DNA of 64,000 bases, from positions 1 through 64,000 of the IMG/VR virus record IMGVR_UViG_3300034072_000758; one strand, given 5' to 3'. Shown here in pieces: positions 1 to 46,394 of the stretch (the stretch's first letter is position 1; every line of letters starts with the position of its first letter). The notes beneath the pieces were generated by a model. The model did no database searches. It saw only the letters and a list, made by a program, of their open reading frames with translations, and was not told the origin of the DNA. A program made the position numbers and the translations under genes.

Positions 1-1
1 C

Positions 2-127
2 GATGAAGCCAAGGATAAGATCATCGAAGAACTCCGTGATCAGGACTGGTATCAGGTCGTGGAATATACGACCAAGGAAGACGGAACTTCGACCTCGGAA
101 ATTGTCTATAAGCGCGGTCGTTTATAA
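2..127 (+). CDS. 3' end of a hypothetical protein truncated by the window edge
   Basis: Open frame DEAKDKIIEELR...YKRGRL* ends just before a terminator hairpin. Confidence 0.6.
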   Translation, partial: DEAKDKIIEELRDQDWYQVVEYTTKEDGTSTSEIVYKRGRL

Positions 128-149
128 GCCTTCTTCGGAAGGCTTTTTT
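126..149 (+). terminator. Intrinsic terminator
   Basis: aagccttc-ttcg-gaaggc followed by a T run. Confidence 0.8.
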
Positions 150-150
150 C

Positions 151-179
151 TTGCCTGTCTAATTTCTCTGTGATAGCTT
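151..179 (+). promoter_or_regulatory. Sigma70-type early promoter
   Basis: TTGCCT-17 nt-TAGCTT with extended -10 TG. Confidence 0.55.
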
Positions 180-208: not shown

Positions 209-592
209 ATGGACCGGACACTTATCATTCTGAGCGAAATGGGTGACATCGAACTCAATTGGGATTCCAAGCACGACGATGAAATCAAAACGCTGATCGA
301 AAAGAAAATGGCCGCTGGGATGATCTTCTTCGTGATTAAGCCGGTGCTCGGTTTCATTCCGATGAAAAAGAAACTCACCGCGAACTGGTCGGACGGTCAA
401 GTCAACCCGGACGATCTCAAGACCCGCCGTATCTCCGTCAAAGACGAACATATCGAAGAACTCTTCTCGGCTGGGAAACTGAAACTGTCTCGTAGCGAAG
501 AGACGAAGTTCGAGACTGTCCGCAAAGCCAAGGATGCTGCTGACGTAGTGGCTAACCGCTGTATGGGAACCAGAGCGCTCGCTGGCGGCTAA
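209..592 (+). CDS. Hypothetical protein with C-terminal di-glycine (candidate ubiquitin-like modifier)
   Basis: ATG 209 downstream of the promoter; ends ...TRALAGG*; TAATG overlap with the next gene. Confidence 0.75.
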   Translation: MDRTLIILSEMGDIELNWDSKHDDEIKTLIEKKMAAGMIFFVIKPVLGFIPMKKKLTANWSDGQVNPDDLKTRRISVKDEHIEELFSAGKLKLSRSEETKFETVRKAKDAADVVANRCMGTRALAGG

Positions 593-1203
593 TGTCAAAT
601 ATTACGGTTCACCAAAATCAATTCAAAAAGCTATTTGACAGATCGTTCGTTATTGACGATCTAACAGATGGTGGCGAATACGCGAATTATGAGATCGCTA
701 AGAAAGGTGCTCACGGGTCTTTGCTGTCGGCATTTAGTAAGAAGCATGAAAATCTTCATTTGTGCGACATTTGTATTTACACACCAAATGTTCCTCTAGC
801 GGATCATATCGCATCCATAGTGATGCATATCCGCGCCGGGGAAGAAGAATCGGTTCTTCGAATTGGTAATTTCTTCAACATAACGTCTCTTGAGCCGTGG
901 ATGTATAAATTCGAGGCCCCGGAGCATTTAAATCGTGTTGCGGCTCGACTGAATGGTCAAGAAATCGTGACGGTACGTGATATTCAACCTTCGTTTGTTA
1001 CGCGATTGATTGCCGATATTAAAGAAAACAATCCACCCCGCCTCATGAAGAAGCGCGCCCGATTGAAAAACAAAGCACGTTCAATTGTCAAAAAAGAAAT
1101 TCTCGGTCTGATTTTCAAAGATAATTCTCCCGGTCTATTGTATAGGCATAATAACAAACCGAAAACTATTTCGCTTCATATCGACCGTATGGAAATCGCA
1201 TGA
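592..1203 (+). CDS. Hypothetical protein coupled to the -GG protein
   Basis: 203 aa; HLCDICIY...PLADH...EEESVLRIGN block; stop/start overlaps at both ends. Confidence 0.7.
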   Translation: MSNITVHQNQFKKLFDRSFVIDDLTDGGEYANYEIAKKGAHGSLLSAFSKKHENLHLCDICIYTPNVPLADHIASIVMHIRAGEEESVLRIGNFFNITSLEPWMYKFEAPEHLNRVAARLNGQEIVTVRDIQPSFVTRLIADIKENNPPRLMKKRARLKNKARSIVKKEILGLIFKDNSPGLLYRHNNKPKTISLHIDRMEIA

Positions 1204-1742
1204 TCCTACCTATTCTGTCTCACCCCAATCCAATCTTGGATTCGTATTCGGTTTATGTGCCGAAGAATGAGCCTGTGGGTGAACTAATCGACAACATGTT
1301 CGAGACCATGTACGCAGCCAATGGTATAGGTTTGGCTGCTGTTCAAGTCGGCGTCCGTTGGCGCATTATCGTGATCGATCTACAAGATGGCTCCGACCCC
1401 CTTCATTTGATCAACCCGGAGTTCGACAAGATTTCGGGCATTCTGTCAGAAGGGATTGTTGAAGGCTGTTTGTCGGTCCCAGACGAATTGTTACAAGTTC
1501 CTCGCTTCACTTGGTCCGAGATCAAATATTTCGACCGATATTGGAAGCCTCGGACTTTGCGGGCTGAGGGCATCCTTCAAATTTGCCTATCACATGAGAT
1601 CGATCATTTAAACGGAAAGACGTTGGCTTCTCGTAAAACGTGGTACGAGCGCGAAGCTTCGCGCCGCTGGGAAGAAACACAAGAGACGTATCCATATCAA
1701 AGCTATGTCGATCTGATGAAATCATCCATACCGCATGACTAA
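1200..1742 (+). CDS. def: Peptide deformylase
   Basis: All three PDF motifs present: GIGLAAVQ, EGCLS, HEIDH. Confidence 0.95.
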   Translation: MILPILSHPNPILDSYSVYVPKNEPVGELIDNMFETMYAANGIGLAAVQVGVRWRIIVIDLQDGSDPLHLINPEFDKISGILSEGIVEGCLSVPDELLQVPRFTWSEIKYFDRYWKPRTLRAEGILQICLSHEIDHLNGKTLASRKTWYEREASRRWEETQETYPYQSYVDLMKSSIPHD

Positions 1743-2168: not shown

Positions 2169-2750
2169 ATGTTGATCGCTCGCATCAAATCTGACTATAT
2201 CGCCGCTCGCAAATTCAAGTCGGAAGACGCTCAAGAGACCGCCACCAACGCGGTCAGGAAGACGCTTCTGTCTACGCTCGTGGGCGAAATCGATATGATC
2301 GGTAAGAACGCCACAGCGGTCGAACTGGCCGAACACATCAAAGTGGGTGGTAAGTGGGTGCTTGGCTATACGGTCAATGATCCGTCACCCGATGCAGAAC
2401 GTTCTATGATCAAGGCAGAAATCAGTAAGCCTCGTGAAACTACCGATGAAGAAGCCCTCGACAAAGTGACTAAGTTCGCCAAGTCGCTGCGTAGCAACAT
2501 CGAAGTGTTTGCGAAAGCTCAAAAGCTGGAAGACGCCAAGAAGGCGGCTTTGGAGCTTGAAATTCTGTCGGCTTATTTGCCTAAGCAAATGAGCGACGAA
2601 GCCGTTCAAGACATCATCATGGACGCTCTCGCGTCTGGTGCGGCTGAGCGAAACATTGGTTCAGTGATGAAGTTTCTGAAAGCCAATTATGACGGACTGT
2701 ACGACTCGAAGAAAACTTCGGGCCTTATAAACGATATTCTCAAGAGCTAA
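2169..2750 (+). CDS. GatB/YqeY domain protein
   Basis: TDEE...K..R, ELEILSAYLPKQMS and IGSVMKFLK motifs. Confidence 0.9.
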   Translation: MLIARIKSDYIAARKFKSEDAQETATNAVRKTLLSTLVGEIDMIGKNATAVELAEHIKVGGKWVLGYTVNDPSPDAERSMIKAEISKPRETTDEEALDKVTKFAKSLRSNIEVFAKAQKLEDAKKAALELEILSAYLPKQMSDEAVQDIIMDALASGAAERNIGSVMKFLKANYDGLYDSKKTSGLINDILKS

Positions 2751-2764
2751 CAAAGGGGGCTACC

Positions 2765-4984
2765 ATGAAAGAACTTATTGATCTCTACAAGCTGATCTAT
2801 GTCGATACGACCGAAACTCGTATCGTAGATCGCCAGAAGGTATTCGCTTTCAACGCCGAACTGGCGTTGTCTGGTTACTCTCTCACGGAACGCGCTATCA
2901 GCGTTCTTCAAGCGACTTCGGATGAATCCTTCATGAATATTCGTTCGGAGGTTCTTTCGGCGCTGGAAAATCCGTCTTACACGGACAGAACCCTTTTCAG
3001 CAAGTTTCCATACGAGACGCCTGATCAATGGGCCTATCTGAACAAGCGCATTCTGTCGCATCAGCACAATGATGAACTTCTGCGTCGTAATAACGTGACC
3101 ATTCTATCGTGTGGTCACGCCATCCATGATGCTCTATTCGACCTGAACGACTTCGGTGCTTGCCCGGTCTGTCAAGAAAACGTGCCGGAACTGACTGGTA
3201 AGTCCAGCAAGCTTCTGGATTTCGAATCGGTAACTCCTCTTAAGCCTCTCGGTGTGGTGACTGAACAGGGTGTCAGCAAGATCGTGCGCGGTCTCCTGTC
3301 GCGCAATTCTTCCCTATCCCCGGCTGAAAAGGCTCTTATCCTGAAATACGGCAAGACCGAAGATTTCGACGTGGACGAAGTGTTTAAAGAAACGCTTCCG
3401 TTCCTGTTCGTTCATTCGGCTGATCCGATGTCGGTTCAGAAGCATATCTCTGGTCTGTCGGATATTCTGCGCATCGCGTCATATGTGAGCAACGAAAGCG
3501 CGGACCTGTCCTTGAAAGACAATACGAAATTCAAGCTCTCGACGGCTCGCAAGAAGCAAATCCTGCGCCTCATGGAAAACTCGATCAATGATCAGTCGAA
3601 TGAAGACCTGATGCGATACCGCGAACGCTGGTTGAAGCTGGGTAAGCTTCTGGCTATTGGATCGGAAGAAAATCGCCGTAAATACCCGAAGACGTTTGCG
3701 GCTTTCGACACCCTGCGTAACGATCCCAAGAGCATCGATACGTACAATCGCTTTGCAGAGCGTTTGGTACGCGCTAAGGTCAAGAAAGCCTCCAAGGGCG
3801 CTCTGGCTGATGCGCTGGCTGGTCTCGCTGCGCCTGTGGACGGTTTCACTACCGCTGATCTTGAACGTCTGGCGACCCGCCCTGCGGAGTTCGCCCGCCG
3901 CCTCGATTTCCTCCTGCGTAATGTAGAAAATGGTTCGGAAATTCTGAACCTGTTCGGAAAGTCGGTGGTCAAGAAGATCACCAAAAAGATGCTGTTCGAA
4001 CTGATCAGTGCTTTCCGTTATCGTATGAAGAACCTTGGAGTTCCGCTTAACCGTGCCTTCTTCCCGAAGGGGAATACGAACAATGTGAAGGTCATCCCTG
4101 ATCGTCGCACGAGCATCAATTCGAACCTGAGTTCCGATCTGTTCAAAGCCATCGACATCATGTCGGAGGAACTATTCAATCGTAACCAAGCTGAAACGCC
4201 GCTGGGTAAGGTATTCATCGATGGTGCGCTGGACGATGTTCTTGTGCCATTCAATCGCCGTGGCGATTCGGATGTTTCCGACAAAATGCTCAAGGGGTCT
4301 CGCTACCACTTTGATCATTCGGGGATCATTCGCGCGTTCCTCTTCTGGAATGATCCATCGGATGTTGACTTGTCGGTCGTGTGTTATGACGAGCATTTTG
4401 TCCAGACGGAACAGGTATCGTTCAGAAATTTGAGCGGTTCGGGTATGGTTCACTCCGGGGACATCACCAACGGTCAGGGCGGCGCAGCGGAATATATCGA
4501 CATCGATGTTTCCAAGCTGAAAAAGAACGTCCGATACGTGGCAATGATGGTGTACCTGTATTCGTATAACGGCGGCGGCGACCGCGCCAAGGCATTTGAG
4601 AACTTCGAATGTTATGCCGGGGTCATGCGCCGCGACAAACTGGCTTCGGGTGAGAAATTCGAACCAGCTTCGGTCGAGTTCAAGTTCAACGTCAACGCTC
4701 GCAAGACGCAAGCTATGCCGGTGCTGATCGATGTTCGTGAGGACAAGATCATTTATCTGGACATGGCCGTAGGTAACAACTACGGGGCTTGTGTCGAAGG
4801 CGAGAACATGACCGATCTGATCCGGGTGTTCGCGGACATGAAGGTGTCCAAGCCTACTCTCAAGGACGTTCTGACTGTCACCGCTTCGGCGCGCGGTGAG
4901 ATCGTGGATAATCGAGAAGACGCGGATGTGATCTATGATCTCACCACGGACATCGATACAATCCTTTCGGATTGTGGTATTTAA
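2765..4984 (+). CDS. Prokaryotic RING (Prok-RING_4-like) plus C-terminal TerD-domain protein
   Basis: ILSCGH...FGACPVC near the N-terminus; RPAEFARRLD; DVDLS and HSGDITN...AEYID TerD motifs. Confidence 0.8.
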   Translation: MKELIDLYKLIYVDTTETRIVDRQKVFAFNAELALSGYSLTERAISVLQATSDESFMNIRSEVLSALENPSYTDRTLFSKFPYETPDQWAYLNKRILSHQHNDELLRRNNVTILSCGHAIHDALFDLNDFGACPVCQENVPELTGKSSKLLDFESVTPLKPLGVVTEQGVSKIVRGLLSRNSSLSPAEKALILKYGKTEDFDVDEVFKETLPFLFVHSADPMSVQKHISGLSDILRIASYVSNESADLSLKDNTKFKLSTARKKQILRLMENSINDQSNEDLMRYRERWLKLGKLLAIGSEENRRKYPKTFAAFDTLRNDPKSIDTYNRFAERLVRAKVKKASKGALADALAGLAAPVDGFTTADLERLATRPAEFARRLDFLLRNVENGSEILNLFGKSVVKKITKKMLFELISAFRYRMKNLGVPLNRAFFPKGNTNNVKVIPDRRTSINSNLSSDLFKAIDIMSEELFNRNQAETPLGKVFIDGALDDVLVPFNRRGDSDVSDKMLKGSRYHFDHSGIIRAFLFWNDPSDVDLSVVCYDEHFVQTEQVSFRNLSGSGMVHSGDITNGQGGAAEYIDIDVSKLKKNVRYVAMMVYLYSYNGGGDRAKAFENFECYAGVMRRDKLASGEKFEPASVEFKFNVNARKTQAMPVLIDVREDKIIYLDMAVGNNYGACVEGENMTDLIRVFADMKVSKPTLKDVLTVTASARGEIVDNREDADVIYDLTTDIDTILSDCGI

Positions 4985-5027: not shown

Positions 5028-5501
5028 ATGTGTAAGCACAATAAATGGGATGCTCGATGGATGGGTATGTGTAATCATATCGCGTCATGGAGCATCGATG
5101 AATCGCGCAAGATCGGTGCGGTGATTGTGGATGACCGCAATGACGTGATCTCTATGGGGTGGAACGGGCCTCCTAGAGGGATCGATGATACACAAGAGCG
5201 CATTCACATTCGTCCCGAAAAATACAAATGGTACGAACACGCTGAACGCAATGCCCTCTATAACGCCGCTGCGAATGGTCGTAAGCTGGTAGGGTGTAAG
5301 ATTTACCAGAACATGTACCCCTGCGCCGATTGCGCCCGTGGGATCGTTCAGAGTGGAATTGTAAAGGTCATTACAGTCGAACCCAATTGGGATGATGCTA
5401 CCTACCGGGATGACTTTGCTGTGACTAGGTTGATGCTGGAACAGGCTGGGGTAAGCGTCCAGTTCATCGAAGGCGAACATTTGGAGAGAAAAGATGACTA
5501 A
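5028..5501 (+). CDS. dCMP deaminase
   Basis: HAERNA and PCADC zinc motifs; GWNG. Confidence 0.92.
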   Translation: MCKHNKWDARWMGMCNHIASWSIDESRKIGAVIVDDRNDVISMGWNGPPRGIDDTQERIHIRPEKYKWYEHAERNALYNAAANGRKLVGCKIYQNMYPCADCARGIVQSGIVKVITVEPNWDDATYRDDFAVTRLMLEQAGVSVQFIEGEHLERKDD

Positions 5502-38999: not shown

Positions 39000-41900
39000 T
39001 TATGGAATGATAATGACGACCAGACCGTTTGCCGAAACAATACCGTTCCCGTTTCCAGTCACACCCATGTACGCACCACTTGCGGCAGCATTACTAATAT
39101 AGTCCACGTCTGATGTCATTGGTGGAACATAGCCCACACCAATCACGGTTGTTCCATTGCTGAGATATGGCGAGGCTATATAGGACGAGCCACCACCACC
39201 GCCAGAACCAGCCGATACTTGCGAACCAGAGCCAGAACCGCCTCCGCCTCCGCCGAAGTAGCCCCCACCACCGCCTCCGCCAGAACGACTTGAGATATTG
39301 ACGGCACCGTTACCACCATACAGCGCCCCACCCGGCGTTGGCGTAGCCCCAGCAGCCGTAGACGCTGTTCCCCCAGCCAACTGTGTGCCACCACCTCCTT
39401 GAAGTTGCTGACCGTTTCTGAATCCACCGGCAACGCCGGTTAAACCACCACCATTACCACCGTCTACGTCAATAGCACCACCACCACCAGCGGCAATAAT
39501 AATAGCATTAGCCTGTATTGGTGTGGAATTACTTATAAAGATACCAGACAGCCCGCCGCCCGATCCGGCGAAATAACCGGGACCGTAAGATGGGCCGCAG
39601 TATCCCCCACCACCAAAACCACCTTGGCGACCAAGTGAAAATGTGCCGGTGACCCCGCCGCCACCAACCCAAACGGTCATAGCTGTATTAGCAGTAACAG
39701 TCACAGTTCCATTTGCGAAACCGCCAACACCACCATGCCAGCCGCCGCCGCCACCACCCCAGAGCTTTGTTGGGAAGCTGAGGTTTTGATGAGCGCGAAG
39801 CTTCCATTCGCCCGCCGCATTCATGATTATTTTGCTGTTTGCTTTATATGTGGTAACAACACCAGTCGGGGACGTAACCGTCATCATATCAGCGGCAACA
39901 ACATTCGCAGTAAAGGTTCGGGTATTAGCACGACCGTCAATATCTTCAACGCGAGCGGTCAGTGTAAGAACAGTTCCGTTGGCATACAAGCCACTCTGAA
40001 CCGAACCACTAATGACGCCGTTTGAAAGAAGTGTTAGGTTATTAGGCCAAGAACCAACCGTACTATATGTCAATGGGAGGAAAGCCGCATTTGAGGTAGC
40101 CTGAATCTGAATATTTACCGGCTCATTTTCAACTAAATTTCCCAAATGACCAGCCGGTGTGATCCATTGTGGCGCAGGAGTGTAGAGAACTGTGAATGTG
40201 AACTCACGCTCAACCAAATGATAATCATCTAGCGCCCCTATGGTGAAGCTATAGACAGTATCGTTACCAACAAACTGTGTCACACCATCAAACGTGGCTG
40301 TATTTCCCGCAGCAGCATAGTTGGCCGTCAGGAACGGCGGTATGGTTGTTCCGGCTGACGGCGAATAATTGACTTGATGTCCATTAGGATCAGTCGCCAA
40401 CAATGTAAAGTTGACCGCTCTGTTTTCCAAGTATGTTCCGAGATTTGAGCCAGTCTGCCAAACAGGAGGCCAGTTTCTTCTAACCATAATAGTGAACGTC
40501 TGCTTTGTAAACTTAATACCAGTAGAGGCGTTCAATGTTACACTATACACGGTGTCCACAAATACTGGTGGCGAAACCCAAGTAAGCATACCGGAAATTG
40601 CGTCTATATGAACATCAACCATGTCTGTACTATCAATCGAATAATAGACCGGGAGACCGTTCGATGTAGCTACCATCGTTTTCATGAAAGCCGAGCTTTC
40701 CTGAACTTCACCGAGATAGGCGGCATTCTGCCATATTGGGGCCGAATTGAACTTTACTTTAAAAGTATAACGTTCCGATGCGCTTAGTACGCTGTCGTCC
40801 GCCGTAACATCAAGATAGAACTCTGTATCATTTTCTACCGCTGGAAATGTAACATTGGATATATATATTTGTGACAGACCATTCGCGTTGATGACGTTAC
40901 TGATGACAACCCAATCCGGGGAAGCAATATCCAAAGTCATGGTTGTGTTGTTTGGTTCAACGATATTGATTACTATTGGAGAATCGGTATCGCTATCCAA
41001 TTGAATCGTTTGTTCCCACGAATCAAAAATCGTGTATCCCGGTGTTTGGAATACAGGTGGTTGGTTCTGAATGACTTCGATCAAGAACGTGCTATTTACG
41101 ACCGCATTGCCGTCCGTAACCGAAATGATTGGAGAATAATTGGCGGTAACAGCCGAAACCGGGATTGTTCCGCTGATTTGTCCACCAGTAGATACGGTCG
41201 AGTCTGGTGGCCAAGAGCCGCCCGCGTTGGCATATACCAAGGTCTGAGACAGGTTTTGATCTGTGGCTTGAACTGTAGCTGAGAAACTATCACCACCAAA
41301 CACTTGAGCCAAAGTGACCGAGTTCGGGGTCTGCCAAACCGGCACATAATCTTCTTCAACATCAATGAAAAAATCACGTGTGGTGACATGATTACTATCG
41401 TCGGCCTGTACGGTAAACTCATAGCGCGTCAGGGAACCGTTGACCAGAGGTGCGGTTCCGCTGATACCTCCGGTAGTAGTATCGAATGTCAACGACGATG
41501 GGAAGTTACCACCAACAATCGAGTACACGACTGGATAGCGCTCGACATCGCCCGCCGACACTCCCGTAGCAACTGAATAGCGTTCAATCCATTCTCCTAA
41601 ATTCGGATTGGTATTGAAGTATGGATCAACGTCTTTGAGATTAAGCATAGAGAACGTGCGTTCTTCGCTTGTGGCCAAGTGATCGGAAACCGTCGCTTTG
41701 AATGTATAAACTGTATCGTTTTGTTCGAGCGGGAAGAAACCTTTGACTTGTCCTGTGATCAAATCCGAACGAGGATTGTCATACGGCTGGAATGACTTCC
41801 TAAACTTTGATACGCCGTTAGTGATGGTGAATGAATCAACTAACCCAAAAAGTTTATTTGTGCCACCGATGTCCGAACCCAAAGTGAATGAATTGCCGGT

Positions 41901-44900
41901 ATAGGTTACACGAGGATTAGTATATATTTCATCCACGATTTGATTGTTAATAACAAGATATGTATTCTTTTCAGACTTCGATAGAACAATCGAATTAGCC
42001 CCAGCTAATAATACTGGCGCAGATAGCGTAACTACTCCCTTAGATTCGAAAATCAATTCATTATTGACGCGCTTTAACTTAAAGCCATCAGCATCACCAT
42101 ATGTGAACAAGGTACAATCGGTAGCATCGTATGTCCCAACAACGATCTCTATTGTAAACTCTTCTTGAAGAGATACATCCCCAGAAACCCACAGATTGTT
42201 AAAGTTCAAAGCATAATTGCCATTACCTTGAGAAACGTAGCTCACAACCCCATGAGTAGTGAGCGTATTCGCGCCTGTCCCTTGGTTGTTTACATTATTA
42301 TTAAAATCGGCGTGATGTGTTATGTCGTAGAAGAAACGATCAGCCTCAATATTCGGCGGTGTAGATGGCAACATCCAAGTATCGTTTTTGGTGAACACAT
42401 ATTCGTCAATAACGCCGTGGAACGGATTATTACCCGCGACCGATCCAGCACCAATTACGGCGTTTGTTGTGCCACTGAATACTGGATATGTCGATACGAT
42501 TGTGCCGATGTACATACCGTCAATAGCCATGCTATAATTGGTATTCGAACCCGTCGCCCCCGGATTGTGATTGATGATCGAGACATGATACCATTCGCCA
42601 ACACGAATGATATTCGACATGATCTGAGACGGGCCATCGGTTAGAACAAAACGATCATTGGCGTAGAAACATTCCATGTTTCCACACTTGAAAAGGGTTT
42701 GAACTCCGCTATTTGATGTAGGTTTAACGAAACATTCTATACCGTAGTTCTCAAAACCTTGAACTCGCGTGACTTCGTGATAACCCCAAAGAGTTCCGTC
42801 CAAAATCGCCCCATTACCAAATTTACCACTGTCGAAATCAGCAGGAGTCAAAGCGCGCGACGGTGTAAGCGAACCTGTCGTAATCATATTGGCCGCAGGT
42901 AAATTCGGCGCATATACATCGACTTCTACACCGTTAAAATCACCGTCGAATGGGATATACTGATGAATGTATTCACCCTTATAAAGACCGAAAGCAATAT
43001 TCTCCGGGGAACCCGAACGATCTGTAAGAACTATCTTTGGTGTAAAGCCGGAACCATACACGCCATTCAAGTCATTGAATACCACACCAGTTTGAATGAC
43101 GTTGTTACCGTTGTTCTGGTAAAAATTACCCGTGCTTTGATCTATGGTGGTCCATGTTGGTGTGACGTTCTTGTAGACCGTGAACGTGAACTCTCTGTCT
43201 GTATAACGGATTGTGTTCGAAGCACGAATTGTAAATGTATACACAGTGTCTTCGTCAACCGTTTCAGCAATACCACTTAGCTTACCAGTAGACGACAGCG
43301 TGAAATTAGGCGGCAATACTCCACCCACAACGGTATAATTGATGCTTGGAGCATTACCAGCGCCAACCGCTTGAAGCTGTGTGGTGAAATACATATTCTG
43401 GACTCTTCCAAACGAACTCGGTCCCTGCCAGATTGGTGCTTGAAGGAAACGAGCGATCACTCGAAAAGACATAGGCGTCTTATAATAAAAACCCTCAGTG
43501 ATGCTTTCACTATGATCATACGCTTGAAGTGTAAATTCAATGATCTGATCTTGAGCAACTTGCGGGTATGTTCCGTAAATACGCCCAGCACCTTGATCTA
43601 TCATAATTCTGTTGCTATTAGATTCGTAAAGTATACTTGATGACTCTGAATAGAAGTATTCAACGATTTGACCATCAAGGTCCACAGCCTCAACGTATGG
43701 CTCGAATGCTGCGTTAGCGAAGGCGTATCCGATTGGTGTTTGCTCCCAACCGGACGCCAAAACAATTATGTTATCGATATGGTATGTGAATGGCTTTTCG
43801 GCTACGCCAGCCGGGTTTTGCGCTGTAACATAGAACTTATGTTCCGATGTAAAATACTCAGCATCATTGGTTGGATTTTTCTTAACAGACCCGGCTATGA
43901 TCGCCACGTTTGTCATCGGATCATCGAGAAGCATGGTGTAAATCTGATGATAAACCGGGGACTGCGTTGGATCGGCCAGTGTCGCATAATAGTCATCTTG
44001 GTGACCGAAGAAATCCAGACCTGACTTAGCCAATTCCGAAGAGGTATTGCTGTTCAGGAAATAGCTGGTCGCGTTTGACGCATATATCATTAGGGTCACG
44101 TCTTCGGCTAGACCGAAATGTCCAGCGGTAGTTCCCAAAACAGAAGGCGATTGCCACACTGGCGTAGAAACAGGCGATGGTCCCGGCGTAATCGGCGCGG
44201 CAGAATAATCACTACCCAATGTCGTATTATCTATAGTATCGCGCCAAACCGGCGCATTGTTATACTTGTTGGTTATCGAGAATGTTCTTACTACGCGATG
44301 ATTCGGAACTTCCACACCACCATTATCTACATCATAGATACCGATGTCGAATGTATAAGTTTCTTCCCAATTAGGAGAGTTGTTGGCGTCGTTAGGGAAC
44401 TTTCCAGAAATACCATTTCCGGTTAATATAAGCTCACTGAATACCGGAAGATTACCTCTATCTGCTATGTAGTAGACAAGACCTTGGTTAGTGTTCTTTG
44501 ACGTACCCACGAAGGTATGATTGAACTCGACCATACCCAAATGCGTACCCAAATTACCGGCTGGTGTGATCCACTCTGGCATCAAATCTTTTTCAATTGT
44601 GAAGAAATACTCTTGGCTTGTTGATAGAACACCATCGGTCGCATCGACCGTGAAGTAACAAGTTTCAGTATTCGCTCCCGGCGTTGTCAGATACCAAGCT
44701 TCGCCGCTAACAACACCGGAGAACGGATCAATTGTCGTGTTGATAGCCGAATTACTCAGTGTATAGATTATTGGTTTAAACTGAGGATCATGGGCTTCAA
44801 TCGTGAATGTGAAACTAAAGCCTTCTACGACATTACCCAAATTGATCGCTGGTGTATCAAAGATCGGTGGGGTATTGAGCCACGACACGAATTGATAATC

Positions 44901-46394
44901 TCGTGAAGACGTATGAACGCCATCAAAAGCTGTTACTGTAACGTTGGTAATGACATCTGCACCGTTATTTGCCGGGGGTAGCTTTCCTACAAACGTGCCG
45001 TCCGAGTAATCAAAGGTAATCTCGGATGGGAGAGGCGTGACGGTGTAGATCAATGGCTTACCATTCGGGTCTTGTGCGATAGGCTCTGGGATACCGACCA
45101 GCGTTGTGTTTCCCAAATCCTGAAACAAGACGGTGTTGCCATTGAATACTGGTGGTAAATCTTTTTCGTTTGTAATTAGAACAGCGAGGTCCGCCGATTT
45201 TATACCGTTCGTCGCCGAAATCGTAAAATCAATCGGGAAAAATTGTGGTTCTTCGGCATCAACCGGATATGGCGACATCGTGCCACTCAGTTCATTCGTG
45301 ACCGTGTTATAAACAATTTCTGGATAGTCTTCGAGGCCACTAACAGTGTAGGTATATGGGATCGGTGTATATGTAGACGAAACGATTTGTGTAGTCGTTA
45401 GTGTCGTGTTTTCCAGATATGTCCCCAGATCAAGCGCCCCACCGACTACACCATCAAAGGTTGGTATTTGAACATATTCAACTCTGATCTTGAACAGACG
45501 CGGGGTCGTATAGAGATCGGTTCTAGCACCAGCAATGACCGTGTAAGTCGTCGTATCGGGCACCATAGGGGCGATACCCGATGTATACCCGGTGGTGTTT
45601 TCGATTAGAATGCCATCTGGCAAAGAACCCGCCAGAATGACATATTCTATGGGTAGAGAACCCGGATCGGCAGCGAGTAATTGCGCGTCCCAGAAAAGTG
45701 TTTCGATAGCTGTATTACCTAGATTACCAGCCGGGGTAATCCATTTTGGCGCATACTCTGGTGGAACAACGGTGAGATAAAGCGCAAATTGTCTCGTTGC
45801 GGCAGAAGAGAGGTTCGATGCGGAAACGATGAATGTATAAATTTGATCTATTTCGACATTGATAGGAGTACCATAAATCTCTCCGGTATCCGTATTCAGG
45901 AACAAACCGGGTGGGAGACTTCCACCGACTAAGGTGTAAAATACCGGAAGATCGAGTTCATCTTCGGCCAAAAGATTATAGGTGAACGGCATATTGGTAT
46001 AAGCCATCGCATCCAAAATACCCGAAGGCGTGACCCATACAGGTGCGGGGACTTCCCCAACAACCATTCGTAATTGTTTTGTTATGCTGACCGAAGCGCT
46101 TGCGGCTTTAACAACGAACGTGTAAACACCGTCAGCACCAGTGATCGTGCCGGTGATTGTCCCACCCGGATTGACAGTCAAACCAGCCGGAAGAATACCA
46201 CTTTCAAAAGTATAAATGATTGGGAGACCGGTTGTTGTCTCCGCTTTCAGAGCTATATTCACGGTTTTAGACGGACGATACATGGAGCCATATGGCCCAA
46301 GCGTCTTTGTAGGAGATACCCACCAGATAGTTGGCGAACCTGATTTATTGAGTGTCAAGTTGCCACGCAACTTGAGTTCCGACAGTCTAAGCAT
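39000..46394 (-). CDS. Giant Ig-like repeat protein with LamG-like domains and Gly-rich C-terminus (fibre/adhesin)
   Basis: Many P-x-W-x-T...LG / YS...GxLP / GxISG / YTFxVxA repeats; WYHV and FHGVIDE LamG motifs; GGGG-rich C-terminal domain; TAAATA 4 nt before ATG. Confidence 0.85.
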   Translation of the reverse strand: MLRLSELKLRGNLTLNKSGSPTIWWVSPTKTLGPYGSMYRPSKTVNIALKAETTTGLPIIYTFESGILPAGLTVNPGGTITGTITGADGVYTFVVKAASASVSITKQLRMVVGEVPAPVWVTPSGILDAMAYTNMPFTYNLLAEDELDLPVFYTLVGGSLPPGLFLNTDTGEIYGTPINVEIDQIYTFIVSASNLSSAATRQFALYLTVVPPEYAPKWITPAGNLGNTAIETLFWDAQLLAADPGSLPIEYVILAGSLPDGILIENTTGYTSGIAPMVPDTTTYTVIAGARTDLYTTPRLFKIRVEYVQIPTFDGVVGGALDLGTYLENTTLTTTQIVSSTYTPIPYTYTVSGLEDYPEIVYNTVTNELSGTMSPYPVDAEEPQFFPIDFTISATNGIKSADLAVLITNEKDLPPVFNGNTVLFQDLGNTTLVGIPEPIAQDPNGKPLIYTVTPLPSEITFDYSDGTFVGKLPPANNGADVITNVTVTAFDGVHTSSRDYQFVSWLNTPPIFDTPAINLGNVVEGFSFTFTIEAHDPQFKPIIYTLSNSAINTTIDPFSGVVSGEAWYLTTPGANTETCYFTVDATDGVLSTSQEYFFTIEKDLMPEWITPAGNLGTHLGMVEFNHTFVGTSKNTNQGLVYYIADRGNLPVFSELILTGNGISGKFPNDANNSPNWEETYTFDIGIYDVDNGGVEVPNHRVVRTFSITNKYNNAPVWRDTIDNTTLGSDYSAAPITPGPSPVSTPVWQSPSVLGTTAGHFGLAEDVTLMIYASNATSYFLNSNTSSELAKSGLDFFGHQDDYYATLADPTQSPVYHQIYTMLLDDPMTNVAIIAGSVKKNPTNDAEYFTSEHKFYVTAQNPAGVAEKPFTYHIDNIIVLASGWEQTPIGYAFANAAFEPYVEAVDLDGQIVEYFYSESSSILYESNSNRIMIDQGAGRIYGTYPQVAQDQIIEFTLQAYDHSESITEGFYYKTPMSFRVIARFLQAPIWQGPSSFGRVQNMYFTTQLQAVGAGNAPSINYTVVGGVLPPNFTLSSTGKLSGIAETVDEDTVYTFTIRASNTIRYTDREFTFTVYKNVTPTWTTIDQSTGNFYQNNGNNVIQTGVVFNDLNGVYGSGFTPKIVLTDRSGSPENIAFGLYKGEYIHQYIPFDGDFNGVEVDVYAPNLPAANMITTGSLTPSRALTPADFDSGKFGNGAILDGTLWGYHEVTRVQGFENYGIECFVKPTSNSGVQTLFKCGNMECFYANDRFVLTDGPSQIMSNIIRVGEWYHVSIINHNPGATGSNTNYSMAIDGMYIGTIVSTYPVFSGTTNAVIGAGSVAGNNPFHGVIDEYVFTKNDTWMLPSTPPNIEADRFFYDITHHADFNNNVNNQGTGANTLTTHGVVSYVSQGNGNYALNFNNLWVSGDVSLQEEFTIEIVVGTYDATDCTLFTYGDADGFKLKRVNNELIFESKGVVTLSAPVLLAGANSIVLSKSEKNTYLVINNQIVDEIYTNPRVTYTGNSFTLGSDIGGTNKLFGLVDSFTITNGVSKFRKSFQPYDNPRSDLITGQVKGFFPLEQNDTVYTFKATVSDHLATSEERTFSMLNLKDVDPYFNTNPNLGEWIERYSVATGVSAGDVERYPVVYSIVGGNFPSSLTFDTTTGGISGTAPLVNGSLTRYEFTVQADDSNHVTTRDFFIDVEEDYVPVWQTPNSVTLAQVFGGDSFSATVQATDQNLSQTLVYANAGGSWPPDSTVSTGGQISGTIPVSAVTANYSPIISVTDGNAVVNSTFLIEVIQNQPPVFQTPGYTIFDSWEQTIQLDSDTDSPIVINIVEPNNTTMTLDIASPDWVVISNVINANGLSQIYISNVTFPAVENDTEFYLDVTADDSVLSASERYTFKVKFNSAPIWQNAAYLGEVQESSAFMKTMVATSNGLPVYYSIDSTDMVDVHIDAISGMLTWVSPPVFVDTVYSVTLNASTGIKFTKQTFTIMVRRNWPPVWQTGSNLGTYLENRAVNFTLLATDPNGHQVNYSPSAGTTIPPFLTANYAAAGNTATFDGVTQFVGNDTVYSFTIGALDDYHLVEREFTFTVLYTPAPQWITPAGHLGNLVENEPVNIQIQATSNAAFLPLTYSTVGSWPNNLTLLSNGVISGSVQSGLYANGTVLTLTARVEDIDGRANTRTFTANVVAADMMTVTSPTGVVTTYKANSKIIMNAAGEWKLRAHQNLSFPTKLWGGGGGGWHGGVGGFANGTVTVTANTAMTVWVGGGGVTGTFSLGRQGGFGGGGYCGPSYGPGYFAGSGGGLSGIFISNSTPIQANAIIIAAGGGGAIDVDGGNGGGLTGVAGGFRNGQQLQGGGGTQLAGGTASTAAGATPTPGGALYGGNGAVNISSRSGGGGGGGYFGGGGGGSGSGSQVSAGSGGGGGSSYIASPYLSNGTTVIGVGYVPPMTSDVDYISNAAASGAYMGVTGNGNGIVSANGLVVIIIP

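Follow-up and report, generated by a model that had tools for sequence, protein, structure and literature searches.

The first 64,000 nucleotides of the 516,805-bp virus record IMGVR_UViG_3300034072_000758, a stretch of subsurface or soil metagenome DNA that is called the window here, carry near their start two overlapping genes. ORF A encodes a small protein that ends in Gly-Gly, and ORF B encodes a partner protein with conserved Cys and His residues. The family of ORF A keeps its C-terminal glycine, and the gene is directly followed by an ORF B homologue at every locus where enough downstream sequence is available. To judge from sequence comparison, the pair is a self-contained two-gene module of jumbo phages, proviruses and conjugative-type elements. 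The reading favoured here, to which a probability of roughly 40% is given, is that ORF A and ORF B are a ubiquitin-like protein and its dedicated thiol enzyme. The observation of the pair and its conservation are solid, and the mechanism is inferred from them.

ORF A (209..592, plus strand) encodes 127 amino acids, MDRTLIIL...MGTRALAGG, from an ATG at 209 to a TAA stop at 590-592; the family alignment backs this start rather than the upstream GTG at 170. ORF B (592..1203, plus strand) encodes 203 amino acids, and its ATG at 592-594 has one base in common with the ORF A stop, forming a TAATG overlap at 590..594 on the same strand. It harbors the motifs HLCDIC (residues 56-61), PLADH (68-72) and EEESVLRIGN (84-93). 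The -AGG protein, the overlap and the motif-bearing ORF had all been described in an earlier note on this DNA, and reading the sequence again confirmed them. That note had also proposed that the terminal GG and the gene pairing be checked among homologues, and both proved to be conserved.

The relatives of ORF A were collected by an exhaustive hidden Markov model (HMM) search of 1.84 billion cluster representatives at E <= 0.001, which yielded 386 representatives, 198 of them at E <= 1e-10. Single-protein word-indexed searches returned the query alone, and exhaustive HMM and profile searches were needed. Nearly all of the relatives are 115-140 amino acids long, and the HMM match extends to their last residue. 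The tail statistics refer to the best 150 of the 386 representatives, with 148 sequences in the alignment. The C-terminus is GG in 135 of these 150 and AG in 11, two more carry a two-residue extension beyond GG, and the terminal Gly is kept in all aligned relatives (148/148). The family consensus for the tail is V-A-V-R-P-x-R-G-G-COOH, where the window protein has T-R-A-L-A-G-G; position -5 is Arg or Lys in 112/150 and position -3 is Arg in 55/150. Ubiquitin ends in L-R-L-R-G-G, and the last Gly is essential in ubiquitin-type modifiers. The ORF A family has the conserved, exposed C-terminal Gly, usually as Gly-Gly, by which ubiquitin-like modifiers are recognized, and across this alignment the GG end of ORF A is evidently not a product of chance. 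Away from the tail, Gly12 and Trp18 never vary in the family, and Gly37, Phe40 and Asp79 hardly do.

The family has no name. ORF A has no match in Pfam, PHROGs, PADLOC or NCBIfam, no consistent Pfam family emerges among 121 family members, the source annotations of the members all read 'hypothetical protein', and the AlphaFold DB holds two uncharacterized cellular homologues. A protein language-model comparison offered the N-terminal domain of Peptidase_M17 as a look-alike (0.87-0.88), a candidate that was rejected, as it lay below the reliability line and had no structural support.

The AlphaFold2 model of ORF A was built from a three-sequence alignment and has a predicted local distance difference test score (pLDDT) of 65 and a predicted template modelling score of 0.61. 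It contains strands at residues 3-9 and 12-18, a helix at 20-35, a strand at 38-45 and a disordered loop at 49-77, then further elements, a final strand at 118-122 and a free tail. In a structural search made without Foldseek, about 35 of the 50 top matches were beta-grasp domains, although all were weak; they include RBD, PB1, UBX, SUMO, USP7-Ubl, MoaD, Urm1 and an archaeal ubiquitin-like protein (Ubl). The Foldseek list is similar, with weak matches dominated by beta-grasp domains. These weak structural matches suggest that ORF A is probably an elaborated beta-grasp protein.

The pairing of the two genes is conserved too. Searching phage genomes with tblastn recovered both proteins, encoded side by side, in Agrobacterium phage Atu_ph07 (490 kb) and Sinorhizobium phage Phosso (469 kb), and the pair is also present on a 480-kb IMG/VR contig. 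The small proteins of these three end in GG, and their downstream proteins are 397-429 amino acids long, ORF B aligning with the C-terminal half. Fourteen loci have enough downstream sequence to be compared (the window, L001, L003-L009 and L012-L016), and in all of them an ORF B homologue, recognized by the partner HMM at E <= 1e-23, starts between -4 and +14 nt from the stop of the small-protein gene. In L010, a very short contig of 929 nt, an unrelated small ORF lies downstream of the small protein.

The genes that surround the pair vary from locus to locus. They encode tail sheath and terminase in one context, ThyX and HNH in another, cysteinyl-tRNA synthetase in a third, and PTPS and dUTPase in a fourth; NUDIX and tRNA-His guanylyltransferase genes are among the neighbours in several loci, and DotM_C and DUF1643 flank the pair in L015. 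Three proviruses were retrieved with a narrower subset of the family alignment, the broad alignment being too poorly conserved; in provirus loci a HerA-like ATPase and an integrase lie near the pair, and one of the proviruses resides in Bradyrhizobium sp. C9. No third gene is common to all loci, and the upstream ORFs share lineage-specific similarities only. The pair is rare in cells: among 301 sampled genomes of the order of Bradyrhizobium sp. C9 it was found in one, which is the starting genome itself. As the neighbours differ and cellular genomes seldom carry it, the pair appears to be a two-gene module transported as mobile-element cargo.

Several lineages elaborate on this arrangement. 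A HerA/DUF87-type P-loop ATPase gene and a tyrosine integrase gene enclose the pair in L007 and L008, where the ATPase stop overlaps the start of the small protein. Upstream, L008 encodes a Dam methylase, an RNase_T exonuclease and DUF1643, and the same pair as in L007 and L008 is carried by L009 and by L017, a Bradyrhizobium sp. C9 scaffold. In the L007/L008 lineage this ATPase may serve as an energy-coupling factor. In a sub-lineage whose neighbours are conjugative-element-like, two tandem paralogues of about 135 amino acids precede the GG protein (L011, 211-1978; L015, 6851-8420), and L011 has a third related copy fused to the N-terminus of its GG protein (P0117, 256 aa). L006, a 7.1-kb Logan contig, is an inverted duplication of one gene set with mirror-image gene sizes; this duplication is almost certainly an assembly artefact, and the contig was therefore tallied as one locus.

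The partner family is as nameless as that of ORF A. A profile search found 23 homologues of ORF B, all unnamed and several on contigs of 100-480 kb. Neither ORF B nor any of 24 partners scanned has a Pfam match at E <= 1, the family matches nothing in PHROGs, PADLOC or NCBIfam, and sequence searches of the PDB with the pair returned nothing usable. Partners are usually 390-470 amino acids long, while the 203 residues of ORF B correspond to a core followed by a C-terminal helical region: ORF B matches the partner HMM at positions 205-404 only and lacks a helical N-terminal domain of about 200 amino acids, which was sought elsewhere in the genome of the window with tblastn and the HMM and was not found. 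The L012 partner is likewise devoid of this domain. As both proteins keep the core without it, the core plus the small protein is the minimal module, and the pair of the window is a minimal version of it.

The AlphaFold2 model of P0152, a 428-aa relative of ORF B (pLDDT 80), consists of a helical N-terminal domain (1-200), the core (about 207-320) and a helical C-terminal region. Within the core, of about 115 amino acids, a long helix is followed by a meander of four strands and by further helices. The core is the sole universal part of the partner family, and in ORF B its conserved portion covers about residues 7-100 (610..891, plus strand). Conservation of single sites was counted over 34 diverse partners in P0152 numbering, and the codon positions were read from the window sequence, always on the plus strand. 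Three residues are invariant (34/34): Gly245 (Gly28 of ORF B), Asp294 (Asp71, codon 802-804) and Asn316 (Asn93, codon 868-870). Three others are kept in 33/34: His264 (His41, codon 712-714), Cys284 (Cys61, codon 772-774) and Glu308 (Glu85, codon 844-846). They are accompanied by His302 (His79, codon 826-828; 31/34) and Tyr286 (Tyr63; 30/34). All conserved residues of the partner fall within the core, and His41, Cys61, Asp71, His79, Glu85 and Asn93 of ORF B are the candidates for its site. In the P0152 model strand 3 is directly preceded by a near-invariant His-Gly that contains His264, and strand 4 ends with Cys284. Judging from the secondary structure, these two residues are probably neighbours in space, because they occupy adjacent ends of one hairpin formed by strands 3 and 4.

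Foldseek matches of the partner have E values of 0.25 or worse, in a list rich in E2 enzymes; once the matches were re-aligned, 31 of the top 50 were E2 enzymes, over 95-113 residues. An unbiased structural search returned FANCL, the RWD domains of KNL1 and GCN2, the UEV-like domain of VPS37A, and UBE2S, and bacterial stand-alone proteins of about 110-140 amino acids share the shape of the core (template modelling scores of 0.58-0.75). Weak as they are, these matches point to a UBC/RWD-like arrangement. In the P0152 model the secondary-structure elements follow the order of a UBC/RWD core and strand 4 leads to the conserved Cys, which resembles E2 enzymes; the partner differs from these by its lack of the HPN motif, by a much shorter active-site loop and by a conserved His beside the Cys. 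By sequence it is not a canonical E2, and neither ORF B nor its relatives match UQ_con or any of the Prok-E2 Pfam families. RWD, UEV and FANCL ELF/DRWD domains, which belong to the UBC superfold without being catalytic, agree with the partner core in size (about 110 amino acids) and in helix/four-strand/helix order no less well than true E2s. These domains are not known to have a conserved catalytic Cys, whereas the partner core keeps its Cys and one His in 33/34 each, together with the invariant Asp and Asn. Prediction of a complex between ORF A and ORF B of the window gave a score of 0.28, where the mark is 0.32, and speaks neither for nor against binding.

The favoured reading joins these two lines of evidence. 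A strict terminal Gly, a small penultimate residue and an Arg-rich tail on a probable beta-grasp protein are the marks of a C-terminus that enters the active site of an enzyme, as happens in ubiquitin-type modifiers and in sulphur carriers. The partner would be the enzyme or receptor of this tail, given that the coupling is invariable and that the only universal part of the partner bears the Cys/His/Asp/Asn cluster. The model proposes that the two proteins would be produced in matched amounts, and that the Gly-Gly tail may serve as ligand or substrate of the Cys-centred site. The partner could then act as an E2-like carrier or ligase holding the tail as a thioester, or as a tail-specific peptidase, and in infected cells the pair would put a mark on proteins of the phage or the host, or take it off. 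Activation of the tail might be provided by an E1-like enzyme of the host, such as MoeB or ThiF, or by an activity of a kind that has gone unrecognized.

Like ubiquitin, NEDD8, ISG15, SUMO and Urm1, ORF A is small and probably has a beta-grasp core, and its family shares with the eukaryotic-type modifiers the flexible Gly-Gly tail, the Arg at -5 and -3, the invariant terminal Gly and the small penultimate residue. It differs in its size of about 120 amino acids, in having additional elements and a long variable loop, and in being translated already mature, without a C-terminal extension. A further difference is that no E1 is encoded in six virus records bearing the family.

This last difference is one of the points that weigh against the favoured reading. 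The earlier note had seen no ThiF/E1 or JAB gene in the window, and this absence now extends further. ThiF-type E1 (PF00899) is absent from the whole 516,805-bp genome and from five other virus records that bear the family and are 89-100% complete, while control genomes were matched. Prok-JAB, JAB and UQ_con were not found in the genome of the window either, although the absence of UQ_con says little, since the control genomes gave no match to it. Conjugation is left with no visible source of energy. An E1 might be supplied by the host. Prokaryotic ubiquitin-like conjugation is so far known from host systems, each with an E1: the sulphur carriers, Bil, Bub and CBASS type II. Other difficulties concern the partner. 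In P0157 the Cys is replaced by Phe, and the L012 partner is without the His; the core has no HPN motif, and its strand 4-to-helix loop is of about 7 residues, where canonical E2s have a much longer loop after strand 4. Finally, the model of ORF A was derived from three sequences only. What survives of the earlier proposal of a modifier with a non-canonical enzyme is a plausible beta-grasp protein with a ubiquitin-type tail and a conserved His/Cys/Asp/Glu/Asn core of weak E2/RWD likeness; the RING link and the promoter that had been attached to it found no support. In a stricter variant the two proteins would conjugate without any canonical E1, the partner activating and transferring the tail by chemistry not described before or hijacking MoeB/ThiF of the host, and tagging host or phage proteins; this seems improbable.

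It could also be argued that no conjugation takes place and that the two proteins are held together non-covalently in a stable complex, in which the Gly-Gly tail docks in a narrow pocket of the partner, polar residues bind its carboxylate or a metal, and the whole acts as one regulatory or inhibitory unit. No E1, JAB or other energy-coupling enzyme was found, which fits such a complex, and translational coupling at every locus is typical of subunits required in equal amounts. The partner core also fits non-catalytic RWD/UEV domains about as well as E2s, partners with Cys-to-Phe replacement or loss of the His occur naturally, and the His, Cys, His and Asp residues could build a metal site. The tail is harder to reconcile with mere docking, as a terminal Gly kept in 148/148, together with Arg at -5 and -3, is characteristic of tails received by enzyme active sites; a near-invariant cluster of Cys, His, Asp and Asn would likewise be unusual for a pure binding surface. 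A complex of this kind is possible, though somewhat doubtful.

The place of the module in phage-host conflict suggests a different role. Bil, Bub and CBASS type II with Cap2/Cap3 take part in this conflict and combine E2-like enzymes with proteins whose ubiquitin-like C-terminus has Gly as its last residue (PMC11601596, PMC11601603, PMC10557695, PMC10097602). Bub and Bil operons are described as carrying genes for an E1 as well as for E2 and Ubl proteins, CBASS type II has an E1-E2 fusion (PMC11601596, PMC10557695), and some bacterial ubiquitin-like systems also encode a peptidase, which is a serine protease in Bub. According to the same two papers, the bacterial ubiquitin-like pathways characterized or suggested until now serve antiphage immunity on the host side (PMC11601596, PMC10557695). 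In uniting a Gly-ended protein with a partner of possibly E2-like core, the pair resembles these systems, but it has no E1 or JAB peptidase, and it is carried by phages and mobile elements, not by host defence islands. Eight proteins of the pair families gave 0 matches in PADLOC, its ubiquitin-like proteins included. The pair belongs to none of Bil, Bub, CBASS type II or the ThiS/MoaD systems: neither their defining sequence matches nor an E1 was found.

A counter-defence function would make the small protein a mimic of the Ubl of a host Bil, Bub or CBASS type II system, which would occupy E1/E2 or be wasted by them, while the partner, as an isopeptidase, would strip conjugates. A module carried as phage and mobile-element cargo and seldom seen in cells (1/301 genomes) suits this role, as does the lack of an E1 of its own, which is expected of proteins that act on host enzymes, and the Gly-Gly tail could be recognized by them. 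The antiphage pathways of the preceding paragraph would be its targets. A decoy, however, does not explain a strictly coupled partner at every locus, the PADLOC defence proteins show no sequence relation to the pair, and the data do not link the hosts of these phages to such defences. Counter-defence is accordingly rated as unlikely.

ThiS and MoaD, the sulphur carriers, are small beta-grasp proteins that end in GG, are made mature and are encoded next to a partner gene, often overlapping it; a partner of the ThiG/MoaE type takes the tail into its active site. ORF A is similar in being small, mature and GG-ended and in overlapping its partner gene, an arrangement that recalls moaD-moaE and thiS-thiG, and MoaD appears among its weak fold matches. 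A carrier of this kind would be converted by a MoeB/ThiF-type enzyme of the host to an adenylate and then a thiocarboxylate, from which the partner would make a thio-modified nucleotide, a cofactor or an RNA or DNA base. Nucleotide and translation genes stand beside the pair in several loci (PTPS, dUTPase, ThyX, NUDIX, tRNA-His guanylyltransferase and cysteinyl-tRNA synthetase elsewhere, deformylase and YqeY here). These neighbours are not conserved, however, so the context is probably just an auxiliary-gene region of large phages. No ThiS, MoaD, MoaE or ThiG Pfam match was found in 121 small proteins or 24 partners, and NCBIfam gave 0. The fold of the partner differs from ThiG and MoaE, and the tail of the ORF A family follows an Arg-rich ubiquitin pattern, unlike ThiS/MoaD tails. 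Neither an E1 nor a sulphur-mobilizing gene was found in the phage, the latter as judged from the flanks, where no rhodanese or cysteine desulphurase was seen, although no search was aimed at them. A sulphur carrier is quite unlikely on this evidence.

An ordinary explanation, by which an incidental GG, unrelated hypothetical or virion proteins and routine phage gene packing account for the finding, is very improbable: start/stop overlaps are common in phages, and ORF B overlaps the deformylase gene as well, but GG or AG terminates 146/150 family representatives, pairing holds in 14/14 loci across unrelated contexts, and the Atu_ph07 homologues are not virion proteins. These are gp231 (ORF A) and gp230 (ORF B), assigned to small protein and partner via the accession offset; the virion proteome of 131 proteins (PMC6102473, Table S5) includes neither. 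Accordingly, the pair is not structural, nor is its product abundantly attached to virions, and the virion-protein reading was rejected. The probability that remains beyond these readings belongs to other functions.

A large family that none of the four libraries searched (Pfam, PHROGs, PADLOC and NCBIfam) has named bears the clearest sequence hallmark of ubiquitin-like modifiers. In the conflict between phage and host it stands with the phages and mobile elements, and it always comes with one equally unnamed Cys/His partner and with nothing else. No system of this kind is described in a large comparative study of jumbo phages (PMC7824862), where ubiquitin is mentioned twice, both times on other subjects. 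A pair that conjugates would be smaller than any such system known, and the activation of its tail would call for an explanation; a decoy or deconjugating pair would instead define a new class of counter-defence, directed at ubiquitin-like immunity. Either way, two conserved 'hypothetical' genes gain a testable role, with Atu_ph07 (gp231/gp230) and Phosso as culturable carriers.

Around the pair in the window, the gene that follows encodes a peptide deformylase (1200..1742, plus strand; PF01327, E 7.2e-37), whose start overlaps the ORF B stop (ATGA, 1200-1203), and ORF A, ORF B and the deformylase gene form one string of three genes predicted to be translationally coupled. No deformylase was seen beside the pair in the annotated, gene-called or scanned flanks of other loci, and here it is context, not a conserved component of the module. 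The earlier note had given the pair a promoter of its own, but a sigma-70 scan of positions 1-2800 found no sigma-70-like promoter on the plus strand. Just 5' of the pair, at 126..155 on the plus strand, there is a terminator-like hairpin, with a stem-loop at 126-145 (an 8-pair stem with 4 GC pairs), followed by the T run TTTTCTTGCC. The hairpin separates ORF A and ORF B from an upstream ORF of 69 amino acids, and its position suggests that a new transcription unit probably begins there. The 69-aa ORF crosses the junction of the record, from the end of the genome to the start of the window. The upstream genes across this junction have no family match, and no E1 is among them. The 'direct terminal repeat' of the record is of 127 bp only (window 1-127 and the genome end, L020 5680-5806); a repeat of this length matches an assembly overlap, which makes position 1 of the record probably arbitrary, and the genome is probably circularly closed or permuted.

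The earlier note had also drawn attention to a Prok-RING protein downstream. A 739-aa protein is indeed encoded at 2765-4984 on the plus strand (PHROG 33734), with a borderline match to Prok-RING_4 (E 7.7e-6, 26.2 bits, the cut-off being 27) and a weak TerD-like region. Its homologues, identified with tblastn, occur in Salicola phage SCTP-2, in Xanthomonas phages XacN1 and Xoo-sp13, and in RpAliso, RcXuper, Weasels2 and LpeD; the same search found none in Atu_ph07 or Phosso, both carriers of the pair, so that its closeness to the pair here is not a conserved link. At the other loci, within the coverage given above for the deformylase, the flanks showed no RING-type protein. The Prok-RING protein was therefore rejected as a part of the module, as no conserved neighbourhood connects them, and the 739-aa protein is an unexplained family in its own right.

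Between and beyond these genes, a YqeY/GatB-like protein (2169-2750, plus strand; PF09424, E 2.5e-18; 'tRNA amidotransferase' in PHROGs) and a dCMP/cytidine deaminase (5028-5501, plus strand; PF00383, E 9.5e-20) are auxiliary translation and nucleotide genes in the surroundings of the pair. The 64-kb window contains no tRNA gene. Much further downstream, on the minus strand (39000-46394), lies the gene for a 2463-aa protein with four He_PIG Ig-like repeats, Laminin_G_3, a cadherin-like stretch and an ALK/LTK glycine-rich domain, which is probably a virion fibre or adhesin.

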